NCBI GenBank assembly: GCA_965153285.1
Contig: OZ229117.1
Strand: one strand, 5' to 3'
Length of the DNA: 64,000 nucleotides
DNA from: Podarcis tiliguerta
Lineage: Eukaryota
Shown here: positions 4,853-60,044 of the stretch, piece after piece
Layout of the letters: every line of letters starts with the position of its first letter
How positions within the stretch are numbered: position 1 is the stretch's first letter
Position numbers and translations under genes: made by a program
The notes under the pieces: model-generated
Databases searched by the model: none
What the model was told of the DNA's origin: nothing
The model's input: only the letters and a program-made list of their open reading frames with translations

Positions 4853-5189
4853 GAGGACACGGGTGGCACTGTAGGTTAAACCACAGAGCCTAGGACTTGC
4901 CGATCAGAAGGTCGGCGGTTTGAATCCCCGCGACGGGGTGAGCTCCCGTTGCTTGGTCCCTGCTCCTGCCAACCTAGCAGTTCGAAAGCACATCAAAGTG
5001 CAAGTAGATGAATAGGTACCTCTCCGGCGGGAAGGTAAACGGCGTTTCCGTGCCCTGCTCTGGTTCGCCAGAAGCGGCTTAGTCATGCTGGCCACATGAC
5101 CCGGAAGCTGTACGCCAGCTCCCTCAGCCAGTAAAGCGAGATGAGTCAGTCACGACTGGACCTAATGGTCAGGGGTCCCTTTACCTTTA
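4853..5189 (+). mobile_element. Sauria SINE (Squam1), near full length
   Basis: tRNA-like head with B-box GGTTTGAATCCC, Sauria core (CCTGCCAACCTAGCAGTTCGAAAGCAC) and (ACCTTT)n tail. 12-bp TSD TAAACAAATAAA / TAAACAGATAAA. Confidence 0.95.
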
Positions 5190-6193
5190 TAAACAGATAA
5201 AACTTTGGCAGGAGTAGAGTAGCACTTGCAATGGGCAAAATACAATGGAAAAAAGGTAAATAATATTTCTAACAAATCAGAGACAATAGGATAAGCTGAA
5301 GGAAAAGGGATTGATAATGGAAACCAGGGTGAAGGAAAATCAAGGGATTCCGAGAATCCTAAATGTGAAGGTGAATGATATGTTTAAATTGAAATTTGTT
5401 ATGAAAAAGTTAATAAAAAATATTTATAACCAAAGAAAGAAAAAGAAGGCAGTGCTCTGGAGCTTTAAGATTTATTTAATTTTCAAACATTTATACCCTT
5501 TTTTGCCTTCCATCATGGAATCCTAAGCGACATCCACGTGGTTCCCATGTGTTCACTAATCCAAGTACTGACAAGACTCAGACTTGTTCAGCTTCAAAGG
5601 AGGGTGGCCTCAAGTGCTTTCAGACCACATGCAGTGGTGACACCGGGAGGGGGGGGGAAATCTGTGGGAGGCACAGAAGAGGAAAAGTGTAGGGAGAAGG
5701 TGAGCAAGTTGTTCTTGGGGGGCAGCATATATTAATGACAGGAGTCCAACAATTGGAGGGGGTTAAGTGTGGGGGTAAGTTCCATGTTTGGGTTGTGCTT
5801 GCCCCTTGCCCCTCGCCCCTCCTCTGCCGTTGCTCATGATGATATCCTTGGATCAGAAAAGGTATTTTAGCAGCTGTAGCCTGCTGAAATTTCGTAATCT
5901 ACACAACTATTTACACTTCCAGAGCCCTCTCAATTTTTTCCACCTTGCCACCCAAAGGGCAGTAGCTACTGTTAGTCCATTCTCAAAACATTGTCCGTTA
6001 TTCCTCACTAGGTCTTTATGAGAAACATTCCCTCCTTCCCAATAGCTGCATTATAGTTTAGTCTTAGACCACATCTAAACCTTACATTTTAAGCACTGTT
6101 ATCTCACTTTCACAGACATGGCTTTCTGCAAATGATCCCGTGAACTGCCTTGAATGTGCCCTTGAATTGTAATAATGTCTCTGGCTTGATCCC

Positions 6194-6195
<2 letters not shown>

Positions 6196-6224
<29 letters not shown>
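6196..6224. repeat. (TG)n microsatellite
   Basis: Direct inspection. Confidence 0.95.
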
Positions 6225-6226
<2 letters not shown>

Positions 6227-6800
6227 CATGGCTAGAATGTAGACTATTGTACATGGGAAGGAGTTACACCTGTTGTCCCAACCACTTTTGCCTCTAATTC
6301 TACCCACTACTGGTAATGTGCCCCCCAGAGGACTGCAATGAGGGAATGTGATCCTCAGCTTAAAAATGTTTTCCTACACCTGATATAGGTATTTTCTTCT
6401 GACACAGCAGAGCTACTCTTCTTGTGAACCTGGGAACGTTTGCATGCAATGCAGAGCGAACATGTGTAGCATGTCAAAGGCCGAGTTATCTGTATTGCAC
6501 ACAATGCATGAAAGGAAGTCATTAATCATGCCTAATTTATTTTGTGGACCACAACACAAATATTAAGCATGCACTTCAGTTGCCCTTAAGTAGTAGTGAA
6601 TATTTAACGAGAAAGTTGCTAGTTACTAGATCCTCATGTTTTCTAGTCCAAAGGGAAACAAGTCAAAAAGTCATTCTTTTAAAAACATACTATATGAATA
6701 TTTGTTTGTGTGCTTGTTTGTTTATTATTTTGCAGGTGTAAGATTATTTGTCTTAAATTAGAATTAACTTGTGCACAAAAGACCTCTAATCAACGCTGTA

Positions 6801-6817
6801 GTCACTAGAGGTCACTG
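6801..6817 (+). promoter_or_regulatory. Candidate CTCF site
   Basis: GTCACTAGAGGTCACTG resembles the CTCF core CCACTAGRGGGCRC and sits in unique sequence. Motif match only. Confidence 0.35.
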
Positions 6818-6897
6818 TTACAGCTGATAGAATTCTGAAAGTTTCCTCTTTCTGTTATTTCTTCAGTTTCATCTGATTTAATTTTAAAACTTTTATC

Positions 6898-6898
<1 letters not shown>

Positions 6899-6932
<34 letters not shown>
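6899..6932. repeat. (TA)n microsatellite
   Basis: Direct inspection. Confidence 0.95.
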
Positions 6933-6936
<4 letters not shown>

Positions 6937-7028
6937 AGCATGCAACTAACTGAAAACAAATCTTAGTTTAAAGCTTGTGTCTAGGGAAACATGTGCATTT
7001 TTCTGTTTATGCCACTCGAAAACTTCAC

Positions 7029-7248
7029 CTGAAAGAAATATGAATGGCTCAGGAGGAAGACAGAATATAAAGATGAGTTGCATTCCCGAGTCCCAGTAGG
7101 ATGTGCTTGGCTGAGAATTTTCATTCAGTCCCTTCAAACTATGAATCAGGTGGAGTCTTTGATTCTTGAAATAATCAGACACTGTCTCATCAGGATTCTT
7201 CACCTCAAACTGAAGCTGCAGGCACTTGAAAAAGAAGAGAAAACCCGA
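7029..7248 (-). other. Candidate exon (alternative terminal or non-coding)
   Basis: Strong pyrimidine tract plus TTTCAG acceptor at 7249, with a possible donor CAG|GTGAAG at 7028. If joined in phase 2 to the 10.5-kb exon it reads GRVFSSFSSACSFSLR-stop (stop 7200-7202). A minus-strand AATAAA lies at 6721-6726. Confidence 0.25.
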
Positions 7249-7709
7249 CTGAAACAGCAAACAGGAGAGAGAGAGAAATAACACATTTAACTGTTGTTTG
7301 CAGTAAGTCTTTGCTCAGTAGTTGGTGTCATTCCAACAATAGGATTTATGATCTGAAATATAATGGGCTGACTACATTTGCACATATTAATAGTTGAGAA
7401 GCATTGAGAATCAGCAGCAACCAAGGCAGCGGTTTTTTATGTTTTTGTATGTGTTGGTCATCCCATCTTAGTAATATGAATGAATATTCATCCATTCACT
7501 TTAATCTGACATGCAATTTAGAAATGCAGATGTAAGGATCTGGTCCAGATTTTTATTTATTTATTTGAGATGGAGGAAGACAAACTTAAAGGGTAAATCT
7601 TTCTTCTCTTTCTCCTCCTTCTCTACGTAATGCTATTGTAGTCCACTCTCTTAGGGAACGGATGAGTGAAATGTGTGTTGTAACAATGGCACATAAAATA
7701 ACCTAGCAG

Positions 7710-8563
7710 TGAGGATGGTCCAATCTGACAATTCTGGTTTCTCTCAGTTTCTCATTTTCCCCCATTGCTAACTTACGTTCTCCACATTTACACCCATACA
7801 CACACTTAAATGTCTTCATGAAAGTTCATCAGCCTTTTACTGTGAATTTCCCCTAGTACACAAATTGTATGTAATCTTGACTGACATACATATTTTTGCA
7901 AAACAACTTTCCCTATTAAAATGTGTTTTATTAAAGTATTTTTTTAAAATACGTTTTGTGTTATTTCACTATATATACCTTTGATCATCGAAGAATTGAT
8001 GCTTTTGAATTATGGTGCTGGAGGACAGTCTTGAGACTGGACTTCATGGACTGCAAGAAGATCAAACCTATTAATTCTTAAGGAAATCAGCCCTGCGTGC
8101 TCGCTGGAAGGACAGATATTGAAGCTGAGGCTCCAATACTTTGGCCACCTCATGAGAAGAGAAGACTCCCTAGAAAAGACCCCGATGTTGGGAAAGATGG
8201 AGGGCACAAGGAGAAGGGGACGACAGAGGACGAGATGGTTGGATAGTGTTCTCGAAGCTACCAGCATGAGTTTGACCAAACTGCGGGAGGCAGTGGAAGA
8301 CAGGAGTGCCTGGCGTGCTCCGGTCCATGGGGTCATGAAGAGTCGGACATGACTAAACGACTAAACAACAACAACATGCACCCTTTGCCCTAGTATATAC
8401 ATTTCTGTATGCATCACATGGCTAGAGAACTGCATTGCAAAATTCAGAGAAGGACAGAGTTCAATAGATGTGCTGTGTTTCTGTTCGCTTATTATTTTGG
8501 AAAGTGCAAATTACACAGGTTCATCTTTAAATGTGAACTGAATCCAATTTATGCCCCATCCAT
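7710..8563. mobile_element. hAT-Ac-like MITE (TAGGGATG-type TIR) interrupted by BovB
   Basis: Same family as 16304-16757, 31370-32205 and 42689-43113, sharing GGAGAACTGCATTGCAAAATTC and TTTAAATGTGAACTGAATC. Degenerate GGATG / CATCC ends. Confidence 0.65.
7982..8375 (+). mobile_element. BovB (RTE) LINE, 5'-truncated 3' end
   Basis: Encodes KLRLQYFGHLMRREDSLEK..LGKMEGTRRRGRQRTRWLDSV..WRA.VHGV.KSRT, the BovB ORF C-terminus, followed by a (CAA)n tail. Confidence 0.95.
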
Positions 8564-9509
8564 ACATGTCAGTGAAAAGAGGTGAAGCATTCATCTCAAC
8601 CAGAATTATTTCTCACCACTGGGTTTACATTACATTACAGAATTAAAAAAACAACAACCCTTTAAACAGTATTGGAACAATGCCCTTTATTCACATTGAT
8701 GGTTATTTCTTCTTTAAAGAATGCAGGAAGCTGCTTTTAAGGTTCCTTTAAAGTAGGTGTAAGGGAACATTTCTCCTTCATCAAGAGCTGCATTCCCTTG
8801 AGAGTAATCTGTCATGATGGAAGTGGACAGAGGCTAGAGACAGTGTTGGGTGGGAGTCAATACAATAGTGGGTGGGACAGCTCTTTCCCCCCCTCTTTCT
8901 GCCAATACCTAGTCTTCCATCCCCCCCTTTCCTTTTAACGTAGATGAAATTAGGCCATGGGCCACATGCAATCTTTAGATTGCAGGTTCCTGCTTTAAAG
9001 AATGAAGGCCCATTAATAAAAACATGGGGAAAGAACAAATAAGATTCCAGATCAATCACTCAAAAGCCTGTGCATCTTCAATGAGTTATGCATATTAACA
9101 CAGACATGCAGTCGTACATCAGTGCATAAATGATGGCCTATCTCTCCATGCAAATATCCAGTAGCAGTTTGCATGAAAACCTGCTCCTCTACGTGCATCT
9201 TTCGTCACGTAAACAAAATAAATGTGATATTTCAGGAATAGACATCAGATGTGGCAGGAATGTTGATGTTCCAAGGCCAGCTGTGCCAGACACGTCTAGA
9301 TCTCCTGTCTAAAGCCAGCTGTCATGAAAAGATGTCCCTAGACTACAGTTGGCTTCTCACTGTGCTACCAGCATTTAAAAAGGACTATAAAACCAGCTAT
9401 GTCATTCAGTAATCAGTTATGGTCACTGTTATTGGCAATTCATGTTAGATGCTACAAATCAGAGTCAATCTTTGTATTACTCCTTTAGCCAATTTTTGAC
9501 CTAGGACAA

Positions 9510-11859: not shown

Positions 11860-11908
<49 letters not shown>
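11860..11908. repeat. (GT)n(GA)n compound microsatellite
   Basis: Direct inspection. Confidence 0.95.
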
Positions 11909-11914
<6 letters not shown>

Positions 11915-19700: not shown

Positions 19701-20102
19701 AACATTACAAGACTTATCAATAAAAAAGGCAAAGAAGCCCCATTGCCACAGGAGTGGCTAGCATAGTGGGGCAGTTCCACAGAGCCACCCTCCTGAAACT
19801 GATGTCCCTGTAGCACACCAGGGGAGAATGGTGGCACGGGAGGATGGCAGCAAGATCCGGACTACACTATACTGCTGAACTCAACTGGTGCACCCATGCA
19901 GCTGCAACCTTACTAGCATCCTACCCGACCCTCATGGCATGCTTATGGCGGGTAGCAATGCTGGTGTCAGGACAATTCAGCAGCACTGCCCCACTACACT
20001 CCTTTTTTCTTGTGTCTTGTCTTTTGAGTTTCTAACCCTAATTGTAATTAAAAAGAAGAAGTTGCCTTGGGAGACAATAATTGTTTGAAAAGTGGGATTA
20101 AA

Positions 20103-20433
20103 GGTAAAGGTAAAGGGACCCCTGACCATTAGGTCCAGTCGTGACCGACTCTGGGGTTGAGGCGCTCATCTCGCTTTATTGGTCGAGGGAGCTGGCGTAC
20201 ATGACTAAGCTGCTTCTGGCGAACCAGAGCAGCGCACGAAAATGCCGTTTACCTTCCCGCAGGAGCGGTGCCTATTTATCTACTTGCACTTTGACGTGCT
20301 TTCGGACTGCTAGGTTGGCAGGAGCAGGGACTGAGCAATGGGAGCTCACTCTGTTGTGGGGATTTGAACCGCCGACCTTCTGATCAGCAAGTCCTAGGCT
20401 CTGTGGTTTAACCCACAGCGCCACCCGCATCCC
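20103..20433 (-). mobile_element. Sauria SINE
   Basis: Reverse complement of the 4853 family, with an (AAAGGT)n tail and a 15-bp TSD AAAAGTGGGATTAAA (20088-20102 / 20435-20449). Confidence 0.95.
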
Positions 20434-23834: not shown

Positions 23835-24192
23835 GGGACGTGGGTGGCGCTGTGGGTTAAAGCCTCAGTGCCTAGGGCTTGCCGATCGAAAGGTCGGCGG
23901 TTCGAATCCCCGCGGCGGGGTGCGCTCCCGCTGTTTGGTCCCAGCGCCTGCCAACCTAGCAGTTCGAAAGCACCTCTGGGTGCAAGTAGATAAATAGGGA
24001 CCGCTTACTAGCGGGAAGGTAAACGGCGTTTCCGTGTGCGGCTCTGGCTCGCCAGAGCAGCGATGTCACGCTGGCCATGTGACCCGGAAGTGTCGTTGGA
24101 CAGCGCTGGCCCTTGGCCTCTTTGAGTGAGATGGGCGCACAACCCTAGAGTCTGTCAAGACTGGCCCGTACGGGCAGGAGTACCTTTACCTT
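23835..24192 (+). mobile_element. Sauria SINE, distinct CpG-rich subfamily
   Basis: GGGACGTGGGTGGCGC head, B-box GGTTCGAATCCC, (ACCTTT)n tail and a perfect 10-bp TSD TAATCCCATT. Confidence 0.95.
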
Positions 24193-24264
24193 TAATCCCA
24201 TTTCACTTCCTGCATGATAGGAGTTTATAAAATTATGCCTTACATTCATGGACATTCAGTGATG

Positions 24265-24990
24265 CTAAATGCTGGAGGATTCAGGACAGATAAAAGAAAT
24301 TACTTATTCACACAGTCAGGGGTGTAGCAAGGGGTGTGTGGTAGATGTGGTCCGCCCCAGGTGTCCCCACTGAGGGGGGTGACAAAATGGTGGGTGACAC
24401 TAACCGCAGGGCCTGCAGCGCACCTGAGCCACGTGTCTCTCCTGGGAGTGACGCACTGGCTTGAGTGCCCGCAGGCTCTGCGCTGCCCAAACGGTCCGCC
24501 CATTGCCTGCCCCTCAGCTGTAGGGCAGCTGAGTGGGAGGAGGCAGGCAGATTCCTCAGATGCCCGGGGTGCCCCCATGGGTGGGTAGCCCCACCCCCAT
24601 GGCCAGCTGGCACGCACTTCTCCCCAGGGGCCCAATTGGCTTGCTCCACCACCAATTGGCTTGCACACAGTACATAGTTGAACTATGGGTCTTGCTTCTA
24701 CAAGAGACATCCACCCATTTGGATGGCTTTAAAAGAAGATTAGACAAATTAATGGAGGAGGGGAGTGTCAATGGCTACCAGCCATGATGGCTATGCTCTG
24801 CCTCCGCAGGTGGAAGCAGCAATCCTTCTGAACAGCAGTTGTTGGAGCTCATGTTGGACATGAGAATTCTTTTGTGCTCAGATCCTGCTTGAGGGTCTAC
24901 CATCAGCTTCTGTTTTGCCACTGTGAGAACAGAAAGCTGAACTAGATGGGTCATTGGACTGATTCAGCAGGCTCTTCTTGTGTTCTTTAT
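24265..24990 (+). mobile_element. CR1-type 3' end split by a hAT MITE
   Basis: FRTDKRNYLFT-coding start, GGATGGCTTTAAAAGAAGATTAGACAAATT motif and TTCTTGTGTTCTT tail. Confidence 0.75.
24317..24663 (+). mobile_element. GC-rich hAT MITE
   Basis: Starts CAGGGGTGTAGC and has a perfect 8-bp TSD CACACAGT (24309-24316 / 24664-24671). Homologous in reverse orientation to 56492-56829. Confidence 0.8.
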
Positions 24991-28837: not shown

Positions 28838-29127
28838 GGGATGCGGGTGGCCCCGTGACGGAGTGAGCTCCCATTGCTCAGTCCTTGATCCTGCCAACCT
28901 AGCAGTTCGAAAGCACGTCAAGTGAAAGTAGATAAATAGGTACCGCTCCAGCAGGAAGGTAAACAGTGTTTCTGTGCACTGCTCTGGTTCACCAGAAGCG
29001 GCTTAGTCATGCTGGCCACATGACCTGGAAGCTGTACGCCGGCTCCCTCAGCCAATAAAGCGAGATGAGTGCCGGAACCCCAGAGTCGGTCACGACTGAA
29101 CCTAATGGTCAGGGGTCCCTTTACCTT
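28838..29127 (+). mobile_element. Sauria SINE with internal deletion in the tRNA-derived head
   Basis: GGGATGCGGGTGGC joins directly to CCCGTGACGG, so about 60 bp including the B-box are missing. 12-bp TSD TATCTATCTCAG. Confidence 0.92.
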
Positions 29128-29959
29128 TATCTATCTCAGGGCAGTCCAACCTCTCAGACTAAGAGTGATGCTGCATAGGACCAATCAAAGCACAAACCAC
29201 AAAACAAACTGTAGAGTGAGAGAACCAAACTGGGCCAGTCCAGATTTGACAAAGGAGGCGGGCCAGGTCCCACTCAATCCCTGACCTCAATTTCTGTGGT
29301 GTTCCCACTACTGCTGCCTTGGCTACCACCGCCTCCACCACCATGGCCACTCTTGCAGGCCACCAAGTAGCTGCAAGGCTGTGAGGGAGCTGCCAAACAG
29401 CTACTTTCCCACCCAAGATTTTAGACCATAGAAAAAAAGGGGTGAGATAGATTGCACAATCACTTGGGACAAACTTGCCGCTCAAGTACATGTCAATGAC
29501 CGACAATGAGAGTCTGCCAAGTTCAATGGGCTAACTTTTAGGTTGCAATCCAAGCACCCACTTAGCGGGAAGGGCAACCAAAAAGGGCCTTGCAGGCCAC
29601 ATGCTGGACCATCCTGATCTATCTAGCTCTATCTATCCCTTCCCTAAAACATGAAAGGAAATGTAATGCCAGTAAAACAATTTTATTGGCTTCAAGACTA
29701 CTGAGGTGCAACAAGCTGGGTGCAAATTTCAGTACCCAGATCTGCCCAAAATGCAGTGATTGGAGAAAAAAAGTACTCTATTTAGGTTATTGATGCTGCT
29801 CATATCCCATTTAAAACAATTACCATTGACCTGGAGGCAATGAGGCTTTGATATTCATCTCAAGAAGAAGAAAAATATACACATAGAAAGAAAGTGCTAT
29901 TTTTCATTCTGAAAACCTTGCTTCATGGCTATCAAACTCCCCCATGCTTTACCCCATTT

Positions 29960-37389: not shown

Positions 37390-37740
37390 TTCACTGCTAT
37401 ATTGTCCAGGGTCTTCTCAAGACAAATTGGTTGGTTGGGGTGATGGTGGTGGTACCTGCCTTTTCGTTGCCTACCACAACTTTAGCAGATAACGTATTGG
37501 GTGGGATTCTTACTAAGGTATCAGAGAGGGTGTTGTACAGCTTTGCCTTCCCCCTACAGGAAGTTGGGGTATCCTGTTAAAGGGATTCTAGGGGAAGTGT
37601 TTCCACCCTAAGCTGTTGGGGGCTGAGGGCTGCAGTTCTGAAGGCTGCTCATATTTGATATCTATCGAAGGGCAATCCTAGGCAGTCATCAGGCAGGCTG
37701 ACTGATTTGTAAATCACCTCATACCTAAGCCAAATCCCTT
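37390..37740 (+). mobile_element. Degenerate third copy of the structured LTR/DIRS-like module
   Basis: Motifs occur in the same order as on the minus strand of the 47.5-kb and 58-kb copies: TGCTAT, GCCTAC/CACAACTTT (37469-37483), AGGTAT (37516), hairpin ATCCT-GTTAAA-GGGAT (37571-37586) and ATACCTAAGCC (37721). Confidence 0.6.
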
Positions 37741-40544
37741 ATATCTCTAAATTATGTTTACTTTTTTTTTTTTTTTAAAAAAAGCAAAACTTTGGTAGTT
37801 TAGCCAGTTGGTAACTTATCCAATTGTTAAGTTCTGTTTTTAAACTTTATTTTGCTCATTAATAACTGAAACATTTTTAAGAAGGATGCAAGTGCAAGGG
37901 CTTCATTTTCATTTTGGAGAGGTTATTGAAGCATGTTGGCCCCTTTTAAAGAAAAAAAAAACATTTAGAAATATCTGATCAAACTATTGTTACTTGGTAA
38001 CCATTGAGTAATGTGTGGGAGGAGTACATCTCTTCAAACCATTCAACCCAGGAGAAAGGTATTATCCTCTTATGCTAGCACTTTGCACAGTTGTGATTAT
38101 TACAGCTGAAGATGGGCATTGCATAATTATATATCTGAGGTAGGAGCTGTAACTGTCCATTAATATGGACTCAGTGTGTACAAGTCAGTGCTATAAAATC
38201 AAGCAAAACTTAATTGTTTGTATCACTTTGATACTTTAATCACAACCTGAAGCAACATTGCCAATTAAATGTCTCCAGCAGACCATTCTCCCGCAAGGAG
38301 AAACATCTTAAAAGTTTTGTTGTTGACATTTTAATGGATAAATTGCTGGGGCTATTAGTAATGGTTCTAATATTATTCTGCTAGTCATTAGTAGAGCAAT
38401 AGCCTGACCCTGAAATTTGCTCTGCCAGCGCTTAGGTATGCATATAACTGTGCCATGGGGTGTTTTCATAGCCATTCCAGAACAGCATTGCAAAAGAAGG
38501 AGTTGCAGTGTGGCTGCACTGATATTATGACAGTTTAGGCCAGGATGAGCCCACCTGACTCACCCTATGGCTATTTTGAGAGGATGGATGGGATATGAAT
38601 GAACCAAAAGGCATTAAAGCTGAAAATTGCATGTGGAAGGCCTGGTACAACACAACAAGAGATAATTCCTCAGTGATTATGTGCCCACCAGAATCTGCTC
38701 TGGCACCCACAAAAGGTCTCAGTAAATAGTTTTTCAAAAATCCATGATGCCTGGGAGACTGCTTGCTGTTTTCTGCTCAGTTTTCACTTTTACACAAAAC
38801 ATGCTTACATTTCATAGGATTCCAGGATTCGACATGCACCCACCTGTTCTGAAAGAAATGGTGCAAATAGTTTCTCACTGTGAGTGAGTATGGTGGCAGC
38901 TGATGTAGGTACTTTTCCTTCTTCTGATGTGCCAGTTAAGATCACTTTGTGGCTGTTTCTGTTCTTTGGGAAGTGGCAACCATTTTGTGTTGATGCCATG
39001 CCCCTACAGTGTCCATTTTGTGATTTGCACCTATGACGAGTTCCAAATATGACCCCATCCACCTTTTTAAAAATACTATACAATTTGGAACTGCAGACTT
39101 TAGGGAGAATTTCAGATGAAGAGTATTCTAGGAACATCCACAGTTGAGTCTATGGCTGAGATGAAATTTTGCAGACGGCATTTTTTTATTATTGTAACAG
39201 GAAGTCCAAACCGTTTTTGGATGCTATTCTGGTTTCTCATATTTGGTAGATGGGTATTTTTGACATGTGGTTTTTGGTATGTATTTGAGATATTTTTACC
39301 TTGTCCTTCTAACAAGTACATTTAAGGAAGTAAGAACAACAACAACAAAACTATGCTAAAGGCATTAGCAAAGAACAGCTATAAAACAGCTTGGTAACAA
39401 TGAAAGAAACCTGATATATGAAAACAGTAAATAGGGAAGATCATAACTTCCTGCACTTACTGTGCAGTGCAAACTTAAACATATCTACCGAGGACTCAGC
39501 AATACAGCTGCAAATAAATTTTTTAAAATGTGTTGTAAAGTGCGCTATACAAATGTGACACCAGATGGCAACAGTGAGCTATGCCAAATTCAATGTATTT
39601 TTCAAAACATTTTTTAAAAAAGCATTTTCACAGCTTTTTTAATATTTGTGTAGATTCCACCTGAGATGCCTACTGGATCCAGTGGTATTTAATCCCAGGT
39701 CAATATAGAGAGAGGATTGCAGACTTAATAACTTAGCCTTCACCAACATAGAGCTCTCCAAACATGTTTTGAACAACCATTTCAGTTCTGGCTGGGAATT
39801 TCTGTCCAAAACATCTGTAGAGCACCACATTGCTGAAAACTGCCATAACTTTCTCAAGTACTCTTTAAAGACTGCTTACTTCCATTTTCTACACAAAAGA
39901 AAATAGCTGACCTTAGTCATCCTCCAGGCATGCCTAAGGGATAAATTATGTCGCTGCAGTGCTACCTGAGAAAAGTCCCCCCTTTGGGGGTTTGTGGTGG
40001 TACTTTGGTCCCCTACTTCTTCCACATTTATTATTTACTTGTTTGTTATGTAAATAGCATATTCCTTGCTATTTATAGGCATGAACACTTGTTTCTGAAA
40101 TAAGAAATAAATGGGATGTGATACAACAGGGCAGGGAGGGAGGGAAGGAGAGAGGGGGACTTCAGCACTTGACATACTAGGCCAACTGCAAACATTGCAG
40201 CAGGACCTGGCTGAGTCTGCATATTGAAATTCAATTTTCCCAGAACATCTTACTGCAACATTATGTTGGACATCCTAGGGAAAATGGTAGCTCCCACCAT
40301 ATTTGGGGCACCGTGGGTGCTTCTACCACGGCCAGGTGTGTATGAAGGAACCCATCAACATAAGAGGAGTTCTGCTAGAGGGACTTTGTTCAGGACACCA
40401 GTCAGGCATGGAGCTGCCCTTAGAAGAGGGGGAAAGAGAAAGAGAAACATTATTATGTGTATGGAATTTTAGTTGATGTAGAAAAAATTACCCACATTCA
40501 CACCCAGACCCTTCTTCTCATAATCTTGGAACCAACTCAGGGCT

Positions 40545-44960: not shown

Positions 44961-47523
44961 AATATCTTCCTGACATAAACATAGTTTTGAGAGAGATGAT
45001 GAAGCTGGTTTTTTTATCTGAAACACATTTACAAATTCAGAAGAAAGCAATCAAACTTTTGAACCCCAAGAATGCAGTCTTTATAAGAAATGTTCTTATA
45101 ATGGAACTCTCAAGTCTGTCAAGGAGTCTGATTTTTAAAAACTCGAGACAGTCACAATCAAAAGGTTTTAAAAACGATAATCCTTCCATTCACTAGAATC
45201 ATTATACTATATGGGGAGGGTGGTGGTTTGGGTCCTGGAAAAACAACATTCAGCTGGCTTTAAACTCAATTCAAAGTGTGGATTGTTTGAAATGATTTTG
45301 TTAGAGCATGGGGATTAAGGGAGCTGAGACACAAGCCTTGTATAATTATGATCCACATTTGTATCAATACTGCTTGCGGTTTTATTGCCATGGCAGCACA
45401 TATTTACAGAGGCCTGCATTGATTTTGCATCTCTGTAGGAAAATCCCACAGTGCTGACTTGTAGGTTCCATATTAGCAATTTGCATGGCTGACTGTTGTT
45501 GGGCCAAGGGAACAGCATTCCACATTTGGCCAGTAATTCATAGGTTTTCACAAAAGCCTAATAAAACCTGGAGGTACTTTATTTATAGGTGTTGTCTCCC
45601 CTCCCCCCTTCTCATGTCCAGAACAGGAGGGAAGGAGATGCATTTCTTCATGATTGGTCAGAAGTTTTCTCAGTAAAATCCCTAAAGAATGAAAGGTAGA
45701 TCCTGGGACTCAATTAGGAATGGATGAATTAGTCTATTTCTACTTCACGGGCACTTCCAGACTGGTGCTATTTTCCAGAGGGACTAAATCACATACTGAC
45801 AAATTGCACAGTTAAAATTGATTTGGAGCTCCAGCATAACAAATCCACCCCACTCCCTTTTTTTGTGATCAGGAAAGTGATGGGAAAATGCACTGGAAAA
45901 GTGTGGGGTAAGATTTCCATAACACAACCTCATCTAACCTCCCTGTAAACAAATCAAATGAAGGCTCAATAAATAGCCAATGTCATCTAACCTCCCCTCA
46001 AACTTTATGGGGGGGGGGAAATCCGGATATCACAATGTATGAAATCTTCCCTTGATTCATGCTACAGGAGTTAAATAAAGAAATGTCACAAAAAGATGTG
46101 AATCTGCATGAAATGTCTAGGGCTGAAAGTTTAGCAGCAAAGGGCTAAAGTGTCTCTGGAGAGCATGTGGGAGGGGAATTTTTATCTGGTTCTGGTAAAT
46201 GGCTCCCAATTAACAGCTGGCAGATTTAAAATATGCCATATCTTATTACCCATCTTCCATCTTTAACAGCACCATTATTTTTGAAAATGGTATTGGTATA
46301 ATTACTTTGCAACTAAGTATTGCAGGTAGATACACCTTTGTAACTATTTATCTCCAGTCTAGGGTTCCTGAAATCTATTTTATTCATTGCATCAAATAAA
46401 TAGAATTCATTCAACAAGTCCCCCCAGACACAGAGAGAGTAGTATTTGTGGTACCAAGCTCTATCTAGATCTTTAGTCAGGAGTGAGGCCTGCCTGCATG
46501 ATTCCTATTCCCCTGTCCTCACATTCATGTCCATAGATATATCACATAAACAGAGGTAGTAGAGGTAGTAACACTCTAGAGCTGCCTCCTCTGGCTGGCT
46601 CTCTCAGTGTTACAGAAATCAGAAAAAACCAATAGCTATACCCATAGAGCTGCTGTATTGATTCTCATGCCACTGTGAAGAGAAACTGAATAGACTTGGT
46701 TTGAAACTGAAACAAAGGTATACAAATATGCATGACAAGGAAAAGAAATTGGGGGTGGGAGGTAGGGGTGGGAAGAAGAATGCTTCCTATATCGCCAGGT
46801 TACCTGCATCAAACCAAATGACAGAACTCAATGCAACCTCAGTTGCCGAGTAAGTGGCTTCCCTTGAATGCATCGGTTACATCCTAGTCCATAGTGGGCC
46901 TGCCATATAATGTCTCAGCTAGTGGTTAATAATGAGATGTTATGCATTCATGCTTGAAATTGTGGGTCACTTTTGATTAAGTGTCTTCCACAGAAAATAA
47001 GGAATGGCATTCTCATTCCGAGCTCCCAATGTATTATGCAAGAGCTTAACAGCTAAACTTGTTAGAAGTAATATATGTAAAACTAAGCAACAAGGGGAAA
47101 GCAAACCCAGGGAGCTTTGTTGAGCTCCAACTCGAACCTTTGATCAAAATTGAGAAAGAAACACACTTGTCGAGGGGACAAAGTGAGGTAACTCAAGGCA
47201 ACAATTTAAGCAAGATCACTGCCTTCCAGTATTGAACTCAGGCAGCATTCACACATGGGGGTTATTGTGTTAGCTTTACTGATTAAGAGGATAGTGCTTC
47301 TGTCCCGTTTTCTAATGTTCCTTTCACACTGCCATGCCGAGCTAAATTTTATTCGCACCAGTAGGTACTGCAGTGTGAAAGGTGGGAATGATGCTCTGGA
47401 AGCAGCTTTCCTTTGAGAAAGCCAATTGCAGAACATTGCCTACATGCTGCAGGAATGCCCCTCCTATCAAGGGTTGATGAGCAGAGGGATTGATCCTGGA
47501 GTGTGGTGCTCTGCAAGCAGTTT

Positions 47524-48353
47524 TGTGTGTTGAAGTCCCCAAGCCACCCCAATAACTCACACTTCACACAGAATTTTTGTTTAAGGTTTTTGGCATAATT
47601 TTGGCCACAACTTTATTTAAATACACAAATGTGAGTGGTCGCTTAGGCATTGGTTACGACTATCTGTCCTTGCCCCAGGGACAGAACTGACTTCTGGATT
47701 CCAGCGGAAGCCAGTCAGGGAAAACAATATTGGGGATAAATCAAGCTGGGCAACAGACCTTCACCTCTCCCAGCATGCTCCCAGGGGCTTGTGCGGCCTA
47801 AACCCGATGCCAGGGATTTGGACGAAAGCATGGCAAGCCCCCAGATTCCTTTAACGGAATTCCCTTGCAGCACCAGCATTGGAGGGGTAGGCACGTACCC
47901 CTCCACCAACCAATTTTTTAACCAATGCCTAACCGCAACCTTACAAGTTGTGACGATTTGCTACGCAGTAGGCAAAAACCAAATGGCACCAGCCAATCAG
48001 CCAATGGACAAAATTCCTACCAGGCCCCTGCCCCCAAAGCAAGTGACCCCATGACAGGCATAGCAAGGTCAAAGTGATAAGACCCCCAGTTCAGGGAGGG
48101 TAGGTGATCCATTGCATGCAGCAAAAGAGAACGCCCGAAGCTGCGTGTCCTGTATTTAAAACCTTTGTGTGCCACCCCCAAATTGGCAACATCGAAATCT
48201 CCCCAACAACTCAATTGCCCAATAACTCCCTGTGGCCATCCTGACAGATCTGCCCAGCAACAGTGGGGTGGCCTGCTAGACCCCACCACAACACGTGCTC
48301 TCTGTGAGGGAGAACACGCTTTCTCAAAAGGAAAGGTGCTTGTGAAGCATCAC
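47524..48353 (-). mobile_element. LTR-like terminal module, possibly from a DIRS/Ngaro tyrosine-recombinase retrotransposon (copy A)
   Basis: TG...CA-bounded core at 47524-48290. On the minus strand it has CCAAT (about 48183), TTTAAA (about 48157) and AATAAAGTTGTGGCC (47603-47617). Motif order is shared with 57956-58738. No clean TSD. Confidence 0.7.
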
Positions 48354-50155
48354 ACACACACAGAGGACACAACCAACAGTTGAAAAGTCAATCTGGGAGG
48401 GGTTGAATCTCCGCAATCTGCTTTCTTTAAAAAACGCCATTTGCGGAACCTCACCCAGGGCCTGTAGGATTGCCTCCTCCATTTCACAGCTCTTGACAGA
48501 GATAAATTTAGGAGAGAGCAACTGGTTCTGTCTCACTGGGTGTGGAGCCTTGGAGGCGCTGCAGGTGACACTGCAAGAATGATTTAGAATGGAGCACAAG
48601 ACATGGGGGGGGGGGAATTTTGATGTAGCACAGAGTGTTGCTGGAAATTGATATCCCAAGATCTACCACAACTGTTGTTTCTGAGGTGGGTGAGTGAGGA
48701 TATCTACTTGCAGAGCCTTACCTGGATGCCATAGGATAACAGCTGTGGAGGGGAGTGGGTGATCTTGGGGTGGTAGTGAGGTTCTGCAAAGGTTTTCCTT
48801 AAGGAGAGCCTTCCCTGGACCCTGAAGGATAACCTGTTGAGGAGAGAGGTCAATTGGGCATGGAAAGGAAGCTCCACAACTGGCTCTCCTAAAGGAAAGG
48901 TGCTTGTGAAGCACCATGCACAGCTATATAAAAATGTCTAGGCCTGAAAGCAGACTCCAAGCTTGAAATATTTTATTTATTTTTTTTGCCCCTGGAAGCA
49001 AATAACATGCAGAAAACCCAATTGCTGTTTGTTCCAATTCAGCAGTAGCAGCAGGTTTTCCCAGGGAAAGCAGCCAGACAACCACAAAAACCACAACAAC
49101 TCTGACATGGACTTGGAAAGCAAAGAGGTGTGCCTGGAAAGTACAGCACAAAAGGAGGTCTGGATGATATCTTAGCTGAAGATAGCTGGTCATTCATTTA
49201 TTTTTAGTTGTTATTCTTTCCTTTATTATGCTTGAGTAATGCCCCCCCCCTTGATTAAGGGCATCTTTTAATTGCCTGAAGGTATCAGTGTTTTCTGAAG
49301 CATTTTGAGTAAATATGGAGTGATTTGAATTTTACAGCAGGAACTATGCAACTTTACTGAAAAACCCTACTGCCAAGTTTAATGAGATTTACTACCAAGT
49401 GCATATGATAGCTGTCTTGTCTAATTTAACAATACTGGACCGTCCAACCTCTTGAAATAAAGCTATTAACAGTTATATGGAGGCTTTTGACGGGGGTGGG
49501 GGGATTTAAGGATGCTTATTACATACATGTCTCCTGTGATTTTAAAGTGGCAAAGAGAACTCCTTAACTTTGGAATAATCCGAGAAATAAAATGCAAGAT
49601 TAATGAAATGCTGTTTTACAGTAGGCTTATGCACCTTAGGAGATAATTCTGCAGCACCAGTATATTTCTGCATTACATGCTCATATACATTTTATGCCAA
49701 CTTAACTATCAGGGCTTCTCCCAAAGACTACGGGGAATTTTAGTTTTTATTCTCCTAGGCATTTTAATTCATACTTAATCCTGGCTGGAATTAATTTTAT
49801 ACTGCTTTTATCTGCTGCTTTTACTGAATGAGGATTTTGGGGTGGTTTTTTTTTTTTTATGCTAATAGGTTTTTATAGATTGTGCTAGTTTGTTATATTT
49901 CTGAACCCTCTTTGATGATCGGATTTTTTTGCTTGTAATTCCACCCTGAACAAAAAAATAAGAAGGGTGAGATGGGAAACCACTTAATAAATAAATTTAA
50001 ATAAATAAGTAGATTCCTGGTGGGCCCAAACTACAGTTCCCAGAGTTTCCTACAGGAGGTAGAATAGTTAAATATACATAAAATAACATAACATAAAAGT
50101 TATGCTTGCATGCACTGTTTTTGAATCACTAGGTAGGAGGTTTTTCTCTAGGAAA

Positions 50156-51914: not shown

Positions 51915-51965
51915 CACTTCTCAGCACAGCAGAGTTAAACTCTGGAATTCACTCCCACCAGAAGT

Positions 51966-52392
51966 TGTTGTTGTTTAGTCGTTTAGTCGTGTCCGACTCT
52001 TCGTGACCCCATGGACTAGAGCACGCCAGGCACTTCTGTCTTCCACTGCCTCCCGCAGTTTGGTCAGACTCATGTTTGTAGCTTCGAAGACACTGTCCAA
52101 CCATCTCGTCCTCTGTCGTCCCCTTCTCCTTGTGCCCTCCATCTTTCCCAACACCAGGGTCTTTTCCAGGGAGTCTTCTCTTCTCATGCGGTGGCCAAAG
52201 TATTGGAGCCTCAGCTTCACGATCTGTCCTTCCAGTGAGCACTCAGGGCTGATTTCCTTAAGAATGGAGAGGTTTGATCTTCTTGCAGTCCATGGGACTC
52301 TCAAGAGTCTCCTCCAGCACCATAATTCAAAAGCATCAATTCTTCAGCAATCAGCTTTCTTTATGGTCCAGCTCTCACTTCCATACATCACT
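51966..52392 (-). mobile_element. BovB (RTE) LINE, 5'-truncated 3' end
   Basis: ORF 51975-52304 is the BovB C-terminus, with a (TTG)n tail and a 9-bp TSD ACCAGAAGT (51957-51965 / 52393-52401). Confidence 0.95.
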
Positions 52393-56239: not shown

Positions 56240-56945
56240 CTCTCTTCCATAAAACTAGAACTTGGGACCATCTGATAAAGCTGATGAATGTTGGAATATT
56301 CAGAACAGATAAAAGAAAATATTCACATGGTTAAACTTTGGAATTCAGTCCCCCAAGATGATGACCACCAAATTATATGACATTAAAAGAGGATTAGACA
56401 AATTCATAAAGATAACAGTGGCTACTCACAGCTAGCTGTGATGACTATGCTCTACCTCCACCATCAGAGGTAGATCCAGTATGGATAACAGCAGCAGTGG
56501 AGGAAGCCGCTCAGGCGCCTGGGGCAGTGCGCCCAGGGGTGGGGTGAGCTGCCCATAGGGGCAGGGTGCACCGTGGGGCCTCTGGAGTCTGCCTGCCTCC
56601 TCCCACTCAGCCGCTCTACAGCTGGGGGGAGGGGAGGAGGCAGCAGGCGAACTGTTTGGGCAGTGTGGCGCCTGTATGCGCCCAAGCCACCGTGTCTCTC
56701 CCAGGAGAGACATGTGGCTTGGGCGCACTGCAGGCCCCATGGTGAGTGTCACCCAGCATTTTGTCCCCCCTCCCCCAGTGGTGACACCCGGGGGGCCCGC
56801 ACCAACTGCACCCCCTTCCTCTGCCCCTGAATAACAGTTTCTGAGGATCACAGGTGGGGAGAATTCAATTCTACTTATGTCCTGCCATGGGGCTTTCCAC
56901 AGGAATCGGGTTAGTCACTGTGAGGATGCTAGACAGACTGTCCTT
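56240..56945 (+). mobile_element. CR1-type 3' end split by a hAT MITE
   Basis: FRTDKRKY-coding segment and TTAAAAGAGGATTAGACAAATTCAT motif. Confidence 0.7.
56492..56829 (-). mobile_element. GC-rich hAT MITE (same family as 24317-24663)
   Basis: 8-bp TSD GATAACAG / AATAACAG and CAG...GAGGA / TCCTC...CTG termini. Confidence 0.8.

Positions 56946-57270: not shown

Positions 57271-57354
<84 letters not shown>
57271..57354. repeat. (TCTG)n(GT)n(GA)n compound microsatellite
   Basis: Direct inspection. Confidence 0.95.
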
Positions 57355-57355
<1 letters not shown>

Positions 57356-57955
57356 GGGCTTGATCACTGGGAGGGGGATATAACAGTGGGATGCAGATCA
57401 ATAAGGTTTTAGAACATGTTTACAGGAGAAGAAAGCCCATTATTAAAATGCTCTCTGGATAATGCCTGCTTGATGTGTACGTGAGAGTTTTTGTGTGGCA
57501 AAGGTAGGGGAGAGCGAAGAGCAATTCATCTTTTTCCATTTGCAGATGCTATAGAAGGGATGACTCAATGTTTCTGGGAAATGCAGTAACAGGAAACTGT
57601 TTATTATAGAAGAGATCAAATAATAACCAATCAAAGGGAAGAGAAGAAGCATCTCTCAGAGCAGAAATTGCTTCAACTCTCTCTCTCTCTCTCTCTCATG
57701 GTTGCATTATTGATGGTGCTTTCCACTCCCTTCCACACAGATGGTGTAAACTTTCTAGTGAAATTTATTCTGACCTTAAGGACGACAATGTGATATTGAG
57801 ATTGATTTTCTCTCTCTTTTAAATGCATTTGGGGAACTGCATTAGCAGAGCATGAGATTCATTGGGGCGTGGGGAGTTAAGGATGAGCCCTGGAACTCAA
57901 AGCTGCATGTGGGACAATAAAGAGTGTTCCACGTGAAATTGGGATTCACTTCAGT

Positions 57956-58738
57956 TGTGGTTCGAGGACCCGACCCCCGCGCCGTGGAAATGAATAGACA
58001 AGGACACGTGATGTATGGTTTATGGGCATGGAAAAGGCCACAACTTTATTGGTTACAGCAGTGAAAAAGGTATTGGCTTAGGCATTGGATGTCCACCACA
58101 GGGTTGAATCACCAGTGGGCGGAGCCTGTTGATGATAATACAACTAAAGCTCTCCCCTGACGTCACCGGGGGTCGTGCCATGGCCTCCCGCCAAGCAGGC
58201 ATCGGACAGAATACACGACCCCCAAATTCCTTTAACGGAATACCCAAAAATTGAAGGCTTAGGCGATGGCCACACCTAGCCTTCCAACACACCATCACGC
58301 AATAATCCAATGCCTAACCTACCCACCAATACCACAAAAGTTGTGACGATTGCTACGAGGTAGGCGAAAAAACCCCATGGCCTACTGCCATGCGGAAAAA
58401 CTCCTACCAGGCACCCCGACTAACCAGGGCGACCAACCTAAGGTCCATAGCAAGGCCGAGACCCTAAGCTAAAGGGAGTGGCGGGTGGGTGACTCTCGGC
58501 AAGACGAGGAGGAAAGAGGCCGGGAGGAGGGCTGGTGCTCTGATTTAAAGCTCGCTGGACACGCCCCCCAGCGGCACCCGATTGGGTGCCAGCTGGTGGG
58601 CGGGGGCGCCAGCCAGGTGAGCTAGGTAAGCAGGGGGCAGTTGCCCCCTGCTAGGGGCGGAGCTCGGGCTCCCGCCCACAACCACTCCCCTCTCTTTCAG
58701 GGAGGAGAGTCTTTTTAAGGAAGGTGTTGCATGTGGAG
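57956..58738 (-). mobile_element. LTR-like terminal module, possibly DIRS/Ngaro (copy B, CpG-rich)
   Basis: TGTGG...CCACA core at 57956-58680 plus about 58 bp of conserved extension. Minus-strand GC boxes, CCAAT (58581-58585), TTTAAA (58544-58549) and AATAAAGTTGTGGCC (58036-58050). TTCAGT direct repeat on both flanks. Confidence 0.75.
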
Positions 58739-60044
58739 TTCAGTGGATACAGCAAAGCCACTACAATAGAGGCACCCACTTGAAGAAGTTCAGGAAATCT
58801 GTGCCCATCCCCAATGCTGCTGAAAGAGTTCAGTCAGCCATCACCCCTGACCATTGTTCATGCTGGTTGGGGCTTGTAGGAGTTGGGATCCAACAAATTC
58901 TGAAGCACCAGAGGCACTACATTCTTGTTCTCGAGCTTGGGATACATCAGAATTAGATTAGAACCTCATTCATGTCTTTGAGTGGTTGTGGGCTTAAAGT
59001 TGAGAAGTGGCCAGGGCTTAATTAGTTGTGGCATCAACTTGCAGCACCAAGTTCTTCATGTGCAGGCAATGATTTTGTTTGCAGGAACATGCCAATCCCA
59101 ACCTACAGTCTAAAGTGGTACAGTCCATACACATGAAGTGGTACACAACTACCACCAGTTGAGACCTGGGGGGTTCACATTACAATAATAATACTGCATG
59201 CATATTCTAGATTCCAGCCAGTATGTTCCTCATTCTCATTGCTTCACAACATATTCAATTGTTTGCATATTTGTCTGTGACAGGTTCATTATCTCCCGTT
59301 AATTGCCTTAAGCATGATAATCAAAACAAACTGGGTTGTTGGGTGCTATCATTGTACAGGAAGCACAGGACAATTGATCAGATTTCAAAGTGAGACAATT
59401 TGGTGTCATTTCAGTAGTCACAACAATGGTGTGCCATTCTGCTATTATCTTAATGACAGAACACTGCCATAATCACAAAGATCTGTGTGCTGTAATTGAA
59501 TTTAAACTCCACGAAGACTTAAGAAATGCCGTTCTAAAGAAGAAGGATCACATTTTAGGAGGTTCATGTTCTAGAGGGCCATATTCGCTCCTGGGCAACC
59601 TTCTGGGGGCCATGTACTAATGGTGGGTGAGGATAGAGGCAAAATGTAGGTGGAGCAACAGCTGTAACTCTTACCGTTGTGCAGTAGCCTATAGTTGAAA
59701 ACTCAAAGTTTGAGAGACAGGCAGGCAGACTTCTATTCTTCTTTCAGGCAAACAAGAGGCAAAAGAACTTGGAGAGGATTTGGAGCAGGCCAGTGAGCAA
59801 TAAGGCCTGAGAAGAGGGATGTTTGGCCACAGAAAGAGGCGTGGCTTAGGCAGTCTCAGAGACAGAGGTGTGGAGGGCTGCATTTGATTACTGGGACTGT
59901 ATACTGCTTTTCACATATGCAACAATGCTGGAATCTGTTTCACCCATGATAAAATTCCAGGGCAGAATCTGGAGAATCAATGTTGGGTAAAATGTACAAG
60001 AAATTTCAGGGGGTGTTTTGCGGGGGGCAGGGAGGTTTTGATGG

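Follow-up and report, generated by a model that had tools for sequence, protein, structure and literature searches.

We find that two barely alignable stretches of lizard DNA share a large fold that has been kept through compensating mutations. The two, units A and B, lie in a window of 64,000 nt of Podarcis tiliguerta DNA (contig OZ229117.1, assembly GCA_965153285.1), by which we mean the whole stretch that was analysed, and a third copy, C, lies in the same window. Homology of A to B spans the entire unit of ~760-800 nt and reaches beyond the fold itself in the alignment; the sequence common to the two otherwise amounts to four to five short collinear blocks. Since the pairing was kept by selection as the lineages diverged, we conclude that the fold acted in a replicating element. 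The units, and the parts of the fold within them, are as follows.

47523-48322, minus strand: unit A, a complete mobile unit of 800 nt, delimited by flank junction alignment, depth, loose-end limits and homology to B
~57955-58713, minus strand: unit B, limits set by homology to A and accurate within a few nt
37390-37810, plus strand: copy C, old, decayed and 5'-incomplete
47958-48066 (A) and 58350-58453 (B), minus strand: domain I, whose helices match in the minimum-energy folds of A and B
Within domain I: helix H0, UUGCUAUG/CGUAGCAA, which contains a U.G pair
Within domain I: helix Ha, GGUAGG/CCUAC
47945-47954 (A), minus strand: 5' arm of H1, GUCACAACUU, which closes domain II
47604-47613 (A), minus strand: 3' arm of H1, AAGUUGUGGC
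58337-58347 / 58037-58047 (B), minus strand: H1
47919-47940 (A), minus strand: 5' arm of H2, UUAGGCAUUGGUUA (arm 47919-47932), with the outer extension GGUUGC
47637-47656 (A), minus strand: 3' arm of H2, UAACCAAUGCCUAA (arm 47643-47656), with the extension GCGACC
58305-58317 / 58078-58090 (B), minus strand: H2
47880-47905 (A), minus strand: H3, a 10-bp hairpin
58253-58284 (B), minus strand: counterpart of H3, of different sequence at the equivalent place
47845-47860 (A) and 58226-58241 (B), minus strand: H5, an invariant 5-bp hairpin with the loop GUUAAA
47781-47844 (A) and 58166-58225 (B), minus strand: H4, an 11-bp stem with a variable interior
37571-37586 (C), plus strand: H5
37513-37521 / 37721-37729 (C), plus strand: H2-like arms
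37588-37612 (C), plus strand: a short H4

A fold kept by compensating mutations

Folded independently to minimum energy, the minus strands of A and B yield the same architecture (z -3.2 to -5.2 against dinucleotide shuffles), and all of the helices listed for A occur in B in identical order. The fold extends over ~465 nt and is made up of domain I (~110 nt), which has an apical hairpin besides H0 and Ha, and domain II (~350 nt), which starts three nt after domain I, is closed by a stem of 10-11 bp and contains a long second stem and three hairpins, one of them with the invariant GUUAAA loop. A previous inspection of the letters of this DNA (the sequence-only reading) had estimated a structure of 350-450 nt; the fold is larger, with the ~110 nt of domain I lying 5' of the outer stem. 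The six motif pairs proposed in that reading are all found in A (47603-48070) and B (58036-58455). They include the outer stem, at the positions given above for H1; the TTAGGCATTGG arms, which are perfectly paired both in A (47643-47656 / 47919-47932, 14 bp) and in B (58078-58090 / 58305-58317, 13 bp); the pair GGGGCTTG / CAAGCCCC in A, corresponding to GGGGGTCGTG / CACGACCCCC in B; the invariant hairpin, here H5; and a subsequent hairpin of unrelated sequence in each copy. The letters of the sixth, CTAC-N3-GTAG, are present, but the minimum-energy folds place them in H0 and Ha, longer-range helices of domain I. These are alternative pairings of shared letters, and as neither varies between the copies, covariation offers no way of choosing one over the other.

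Taken singly, H3, H4 and domain I beat shuffles in both copies (z -2.4 to -4.6), H3 with z -4.1 in A and -3.9 in B and domain I with z -2.8 in A and -4.6 in B. The variable hairpins that had been described after H4 fare differently, folding no better than shuffles in A and B, and pairing in the H1-H2 linker is no better than cross-controls. A pseudoknot of the GUUAAA loop with the stretch before AAUAAA, possible in A and absent in B, was rejected, and resemblances noticed by eye to telomerase RNA, 5S, a tRNA primer site and a CCAAT box were dropped as not conserved between A and B. In domain I of A, a tandem duplication of AUUGGCUG at 47993-48008 creates two CCAAT-box-like strings; as B has neither of them, they probably do not represent a conserved element of the promoter.

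The central evidence comes from a covariance model built from A alone, which covers the three inner hairpins (135 nt, 26 pairs) and recovers B with 36.4 bits and an E value of 2e-6. The same model gives the hairpin of C at E ~1, which is not significant, and in the whole 64 kb searched at E up to 10 the remaining hits are self-matches or unrelated low scores. All 26 pairs of the inner hairpins form in both A and B, 50 out of 50 cells of the A/B model alignment are standard pairs, and seven of the 26 pairs have changed on both sides between the copies (three in H3, four in H4). Controls in which the 3' partner was slid by 1-3 columns give 0-1 double-sided changes and 36-56% pairing, and the observed values were reached by 4 of 500 shuffles; the pair count is taken over two sequences, in an alignment fitted to the model and with the structure taken from A. 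The compensatory conservation that had been claimed for the two copies is thus confirmed. One further compensated pair, U-A in A and A-U in B, is found at the inner end of H2. Copy C, the third of the three copies readable as sequence, keeps the GUUAAA loop of H5 above a stem in which one pair is compensated (U-A to C-G), and its H2 has a compensated pair (C-G to U-A) beside one broken pair. A loop that stays fixed while its stem covaries, as that of H5 does in C, is typical of a hairpin that a protein or another RNA reads.

Might the whole be a chance or relic palindrome without selected function? All three copies are dead, shuffles match both the H1-H2 linker and the hairpins that follow H4, and copy C as a whole folds no better than chance (z 0.07 against shuffles). 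Against this stand seven double-sided compensations without a single broken pair between A and B, in copies that barely align otherwise, the recovery of B by the model of A, and a significant z for each main part in both copies. We regard such an origin as scarcely credible.

The folded strand and the limits of the unit

The signals that surround the fold, and the repeats into which unit A is set, are these.

48153-48160 (A), minus strand: TATA-like box TTTAAATA, aligned and conserved between A and B
58543-58549 (B), minus strand: equivalent of the TATA-like box, aligned and conserved between A and B
47612-47617 (A), minus strand: AAUAAA, overlapping the 3' arm of H1
58045-58050 (B), minus strand: AAUAAA
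48398-48925, minus strand: repeat A0, ~528 nt, of a different family with ~40-nt inverted ends, adjoining A upstream
48323-48372 and 47375-47522: host repeat, of the same family as A0, interrupted by A

Along the minus strand the unit is ordered as short inverted ends, TATA-like box, domain I, domain II and AAUAAA, followed by ~90 nt. Unit A starts with (AAA)GCGTGTT... and ends with ...AACACAC(AAAA), which makes a terminal inverted repeat of ~7 nt, and TGTT...AACA sits 3 nt inside the unit ends. The TATA-like box may serve as a promoter; its core, TTTAAA, is palindromic, and its surroundings are among the least conserved parts of the unit in the depth data. The 15-mer AAUAAAGUUGUGGCC around AAUAAA is identical in A and B, and the closing stem overlaps this poly(A) signal, as had been noticed before, with the last two letters of AAUAAA inside H1 in A and the last three in B.

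Several observations bear on which strand folds. The energies of the minus-strand folds are lower, -181.3 versus -162.8 kcal/mol in A and -179.9 versus -145.0 kcal/mol in B. Wobbles adjoining the helices that are common to the folds of both strands number 14 on the minus strand versus one on the plus strand in B, and seven versus five in A, where the asymmetry is weak. At 47640, in the H2 extension, the family-majority letter converts a U.G pair of A into U-A, at 47842 and 47843, in H4, the family-majority letters convert minus-strand wobbles of A into Watson-Crick pairs, and at 47967 a minority variant does the same to a minus-strand G.U pair of A; on the plus strand all four would be A.C mismatches. 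The lower energies, the wobbles and the family variants, along with the identical 15-mer, favour a folded minus-sense single strand, the strand for which the sequence-only reading had opted. Its acting form would be RNA rather than single-stranded DNA, although the strand data alone fit both.

An unlikely alternative is that the inverted repeats act at the DNA level, as recombinase or transposase sites or as the single-stranded or cruciform substrate of a foldback-like element, with no functional RNA involved. Nested inverted repeats do extend as far as the termini, and the fold of the unit as a whole is a closed one (z -6.2 and -4.8, over stretches that include ~40-140 nt of flank); the palindromic TTTAAA means that the 'TATA' gives no strand, and the RNA-seq data described below are devoid of a discrete transcript. 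Yet covariation is seen in local hairpins (H3, H4, H5) that span only 6-50 nt, for which protein sites at the two ends offer no explanation; domain I is asymmetric about the centre of the unit; the wobble asymmetry and the majority letters of the family speak for a single folded strand; and G.T pairs are poorly tolerated in DNA helices.

The limits of unit A follow from its insertion site, whose structure was tested on this one copy. When the flanks are rejoined without 48322-47523, they align unbroken across the junction to repeat A0 (score 40, z 17), and being thus continuous with A0 they identify A as a clean insert of 800 nt. No target duplication of 4-6 bp is present at A, where the insert is bounded only by A-runs, AAA on the 5' side and AAAA on the 3' side. 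A0 and the split host repeat carry an identical terminal string of 23 nt (48327-48349, 48891-48913), and the 42-nt inverted motifs around A (z 11) are arms of the host repeat and lie outside the unit. Three other readings of this neighbourhood were given up. The quasi-palindromic motifs cannot be A's own termini, as the joined-flank alignment assigns them to the host repeat. A DIRS1-type arrangement of inverted terminal repeats and an internal complementary region was dropped because the inverted motifs are halves of the host repeat; only one half of the putative internal complementary region scored (z 3.2 versus -0.6), and inverted terminal repeats of ~166 nt have been reported for AcDIRS (PMC3266345). 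Finally, A0 and A do not form a single split-repeat element, since the termini are 100% alike over 23 nt and the 3' parts ~65%.

The proposal of a retroelement-like module holds, with no target-site duplication at A. One such module would be a solo LTR left by an integrase-type LTR retrotransposon or by an endogenous retrovirus; the fold would then correspond to the structured R of HIV-1 or HTLV, though at ~500 nt it would be uncommonly long. The succession of TATA-like box, structured stretch, AAUAAA and ~90-nt tail resembles a U3-R-U5 layout, with signals that are conserved in B and whose function is predicted from sequence; TGTT...AACA lies 3 nt inside the ends, and the copy number fits. 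Nevertheless, A has exact limits with A-runs only and without a target duplication of 4-6 bp, and it ends in GCGTGT... and ...ACACAC rather than in TG...CA flanked by a duplication. No paired LTR, primer-binding site, polypurine tract or gag/pol remnant was found nearby, and A and B, co-oriented and 10.4 kb apart, are far too diverged to be the LTRs of one element. We therefore give the solo LTR little credence.

In the 64-kb window, including the sequence adjoining A, B and C, no ORF of at least 110 aa has any Pfam hit, a Pfam scan of 40 ORFs, taken from the neighbourhoods of the three copies and from the window at large, returned nothing meaningful, and a spurious ORF spanning the conserved block found no homologue when used as a protein query. 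With neither ORFs nor Pfam domains in the unit, whatever is conserved there is non-coding.

Elsewhere, and without long ORFs, the window contains Sauria-SINE-like repeats and microsatellites, and has the look of squamate DNA, chiefly on account of the former. Four Sauria-SINE-like copies, 80-98% alike and in both orientations, lie at 4855-5190, 20102-20432, 23855-24195 and 28851-29132, and compound (GT)n(GA)n microsatellites at 11860-11913 and 57309-57362 are 96% alike over 46 nt. An inverted pair of 331 nt, 8045-8375 / 51964-52294 (also 7990-8036 / 52299-52345), is 93% complementary across 43.6 kb and represents two young copies of another interspersed repeat. A GC-rich inverted pair, 24376-24555 / 56584-56770 (78-91%), gives weak and non-significant matches to the hairpin model R1 (E 0.2-3), which are probably due to composition.

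Copy number and transcription

Both in this lizard genome and in those of its relatives, the unit is present in high copy number. Depth was taken from the contigs of a deep DNA run, which match a single-copy flank of the window with zero differences. Summed DNA depth, 65-100 over the flanks, rises to 0.4 million close to the 5' end of the unit and to 1.4 million over the bin of AAUAAA and H1 (47586-47639), peaks at 2.27 million over 47910-47963 and is down to 25,000-100,000 in the variable middle. Repetition is thus hundreds- to ten-thousand-fold above the single-copy flanks, summed depth not being the same as copy number. Words of the stretch occur in eight organisms. Just beyond A and its host repeat, 47262-47369 is moderately repeated, with a summed depth of 6,000-9,000 against the 65-100 of the flanks.

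Is the fold made as an RNA of its own? Two RNA-seq runs from a related species (X23, X24) gave 96 reads in one and 129 in the other, which are 85-95% alike and hence derive from other copies. RNA depth tracks DNA copy number within ~3-5-fold in every bin, including those upstream of the TATA-like box (48288-48341) and downstream of AAUAAA (47532-47585), and there are reads that run through the presumed cleavage site. Mate orientation is strongly biased to the plus strand in X24 and unbiased in X23. Read starts and ends do not pile up in the two runs, nor is a discrete transcript from the TATA-like box to AAUAAA seen in them. For these data, read-through at a low level, transcription from introns or carry-over of DNA would be a sufficient explanation. 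A discrete structured RNA thus finds no support in the two runs, the ratio of RNA to DNA depth being flat over the whole unit and also outside the stretch from the TATA-like box to AAUAAA.

The same data weigh on the idea that the unit is a self-contained Pol II gene, running ~500-535 nt from TATA to AAUAAA, for a non-coding RNA that acts in trans as primer, scaffold or decoy. Its appeal is that the TATA-like box and AAUAAA bracket the fold in A and in B; against it, the ratio of RNA to DNA depth is no higher inside this bracket than outside, read ends do not pile up, and few parts of the unit are less conserved than the surroundings of the TATA-like box. We consider such a gene very unlikely.

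The kind of element and its relation to known systems

Our best explanation, held with slightly better than even confidence, is that a non-coding mobile unit has this fold as its structured, conserved core, and that the unit is likely the terminal or solo module of a Ngaro-type (DIRS-order) tyrosine-recombinase retroelement. The fold would work in the replicating element, most likely as minus-sense single-stranded RNA. Because the unit lacks coding capacity, whatever is conserved in it is a cis signal; we suggest that the fold is a signal at or near the 3' end of the RNA, recognised by Gag/RT, either the element's own or that of an autonomous partner, and that such recognition may serve packaging or the start of reverse transcription. 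The invariant GUUAAA hairpin, with its self-complementary UUAA core, could be a specific contact or a kissing site, and the closing stem H1 might modulate how often AAUAAA is used. Recognition, packaging and poly(A) control are in this sense candidate roles. A ribozyme role, which had also been considered, found no backing: neither A (47300-48400) nor B (57900-58760) matched a ribozyme family when scanned permissively against Rfam. To our knowledge, how reverse transcription is primed in tyrosine-recombinase retroelements is unsettled.

The assignment to Ngaro/DIRS is a lead with one supporting feature and not a finding. Integration without target duplication at a short A trinucleotide is seen at A (one copy); DIRS-type elements integrate via a 3-nt junction, which is AAA in AcDIRS2 (PMC3266345), and the terminal repeats of Ngaro elements are non-coding and a few hundred nt long (PMC9210276). 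According to PMC4746887, lizards have no Ngaro elements. No tyrosine recombinase or RT/RNase H ORF occurs in the window or next to A, B and C, as is expected of solo or non-autonomous copies, so the family stays compatible. In a search for a B1-like repeat, the upstream flanks compared with the 3' parts of the units gave z 1.4 for A and 1.0 for B; the upstream repeat being non-significant, a B1-A2-B2 reading of the flanks was dropped. Two composite DNA patterns found no further copies in viral, metagenome and prokaryote contigs.

A bolder proposal, distinctly unlikely in our judgement, is that of a protein-free minimal retroelement moved by a tyrosine recombinase, its RNA consisting almost wholly of one structured domain and replicating by way of terminal redundancy. 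Transcription from its own TATA-like box would pass the stem-occluded AAUAAA, continue over the junction at which the ends of a circular or tandem copy meet, and terminate on the second pass, giving an RNA with ~500 nt of terminal redundancy, from which the RT and recombinase of a partner would rebuild the circle and insert it at AAA. Were it true, non-autonomous YR retroelements would have a defined cis-acting RNA and a replication logic for the first time.

How does the unit, read as a module of a tyrosine-recombinase retroelement, compare with known systems? Like elements of the Ngaro/DIRS order, which have split direct repeats (A1...B1-A2-B2), a 3-nt crossover and no target duplication, unit A is bounded by AAA, free of a duplication and equipped with short inverted ends. 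It differs from them in having no recombinase or RT nearby and no significant B1-like repeat upstream, and its 760-800 nt exceed the A and B repeats reported for Xenopus (236 + 152 nt). The literature searched contained no description of RNA structure in DIRS/Ngaro elements and nothing on cis-acting RNA signals of tyrosine-recombinase retroelements; searches of the literature for the motif strings returned primer coincidences only.

Retroviral R regions contain stable folds between promoter and poly(A) signal, among them TAR and the poly(A) hairpin of HIV-1 and the Rex-responsive element of HTLV-1. The unit likewise has a fold between a putative promoter and the poly(A) signal with AAUAAA partly in a helix, but this fold is much larger (~465 nt), places AAUAAA at the 3' foot of a 350-nt domain instead of in a small hairpin, does not span the distance from the signal to the cleavage site, and has no sequence or Rfam similarity to the retroviral structures. 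As to a poly(A)-occluding hairpin of the HIV-1 type, the last two (A) or three (B) letters of AAUAAA are taken up by H1. Non-LTR retrotransposons carry 3'-UTR structures that are recognised by their own RT, as in R2 and in the stem-loops of stringent-type LINEs and SINEs; the likeness lies in a structure kept by non-coding copies. In those elements the structure, or else a tail, forms the end, whereas the unit continues for ~90 nt, and its copies are not a 5'-truncated series. With retrozymes and hammerhead-bearing Penelope-like elements it shares the character of an abundant, highly structured, non-autonomous and non-coding retroelement RNA, but it has no match to a hammerhead, HDV-like or other ribozyme (E up to 10) and no tandem arrangement. 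MITEs and foldback transposons are also non-coding, and inverted repeats run throughout them as through the unit; its terminal inverted repeat is only ~7 nt, however, it has no target duplication, its local covarying hairpins and strand asymmetry do not fit, and the long inverted repeats around it are those of the host repeat.

Rfam 15 gave no match at gathering score in the 64-kb window and, for A and B at E up to 10, nothing but noise, which, together with the lack of a description in the literature searched, agrees with the view that the fold belongs to no described family. Were the unit an ordinary solo LTR, it would add only one more structured R region. As a family in its own right it would add an RNA to squamate genome annotation at many thousands of sites, and its large compensated fold, the stem at the poly(A) signal and the invariant loop are concrete, mutable targets for recognition by an element protein. 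The RNA family is new, and its kind is familiar: a cis-acting fold in a mobile element.
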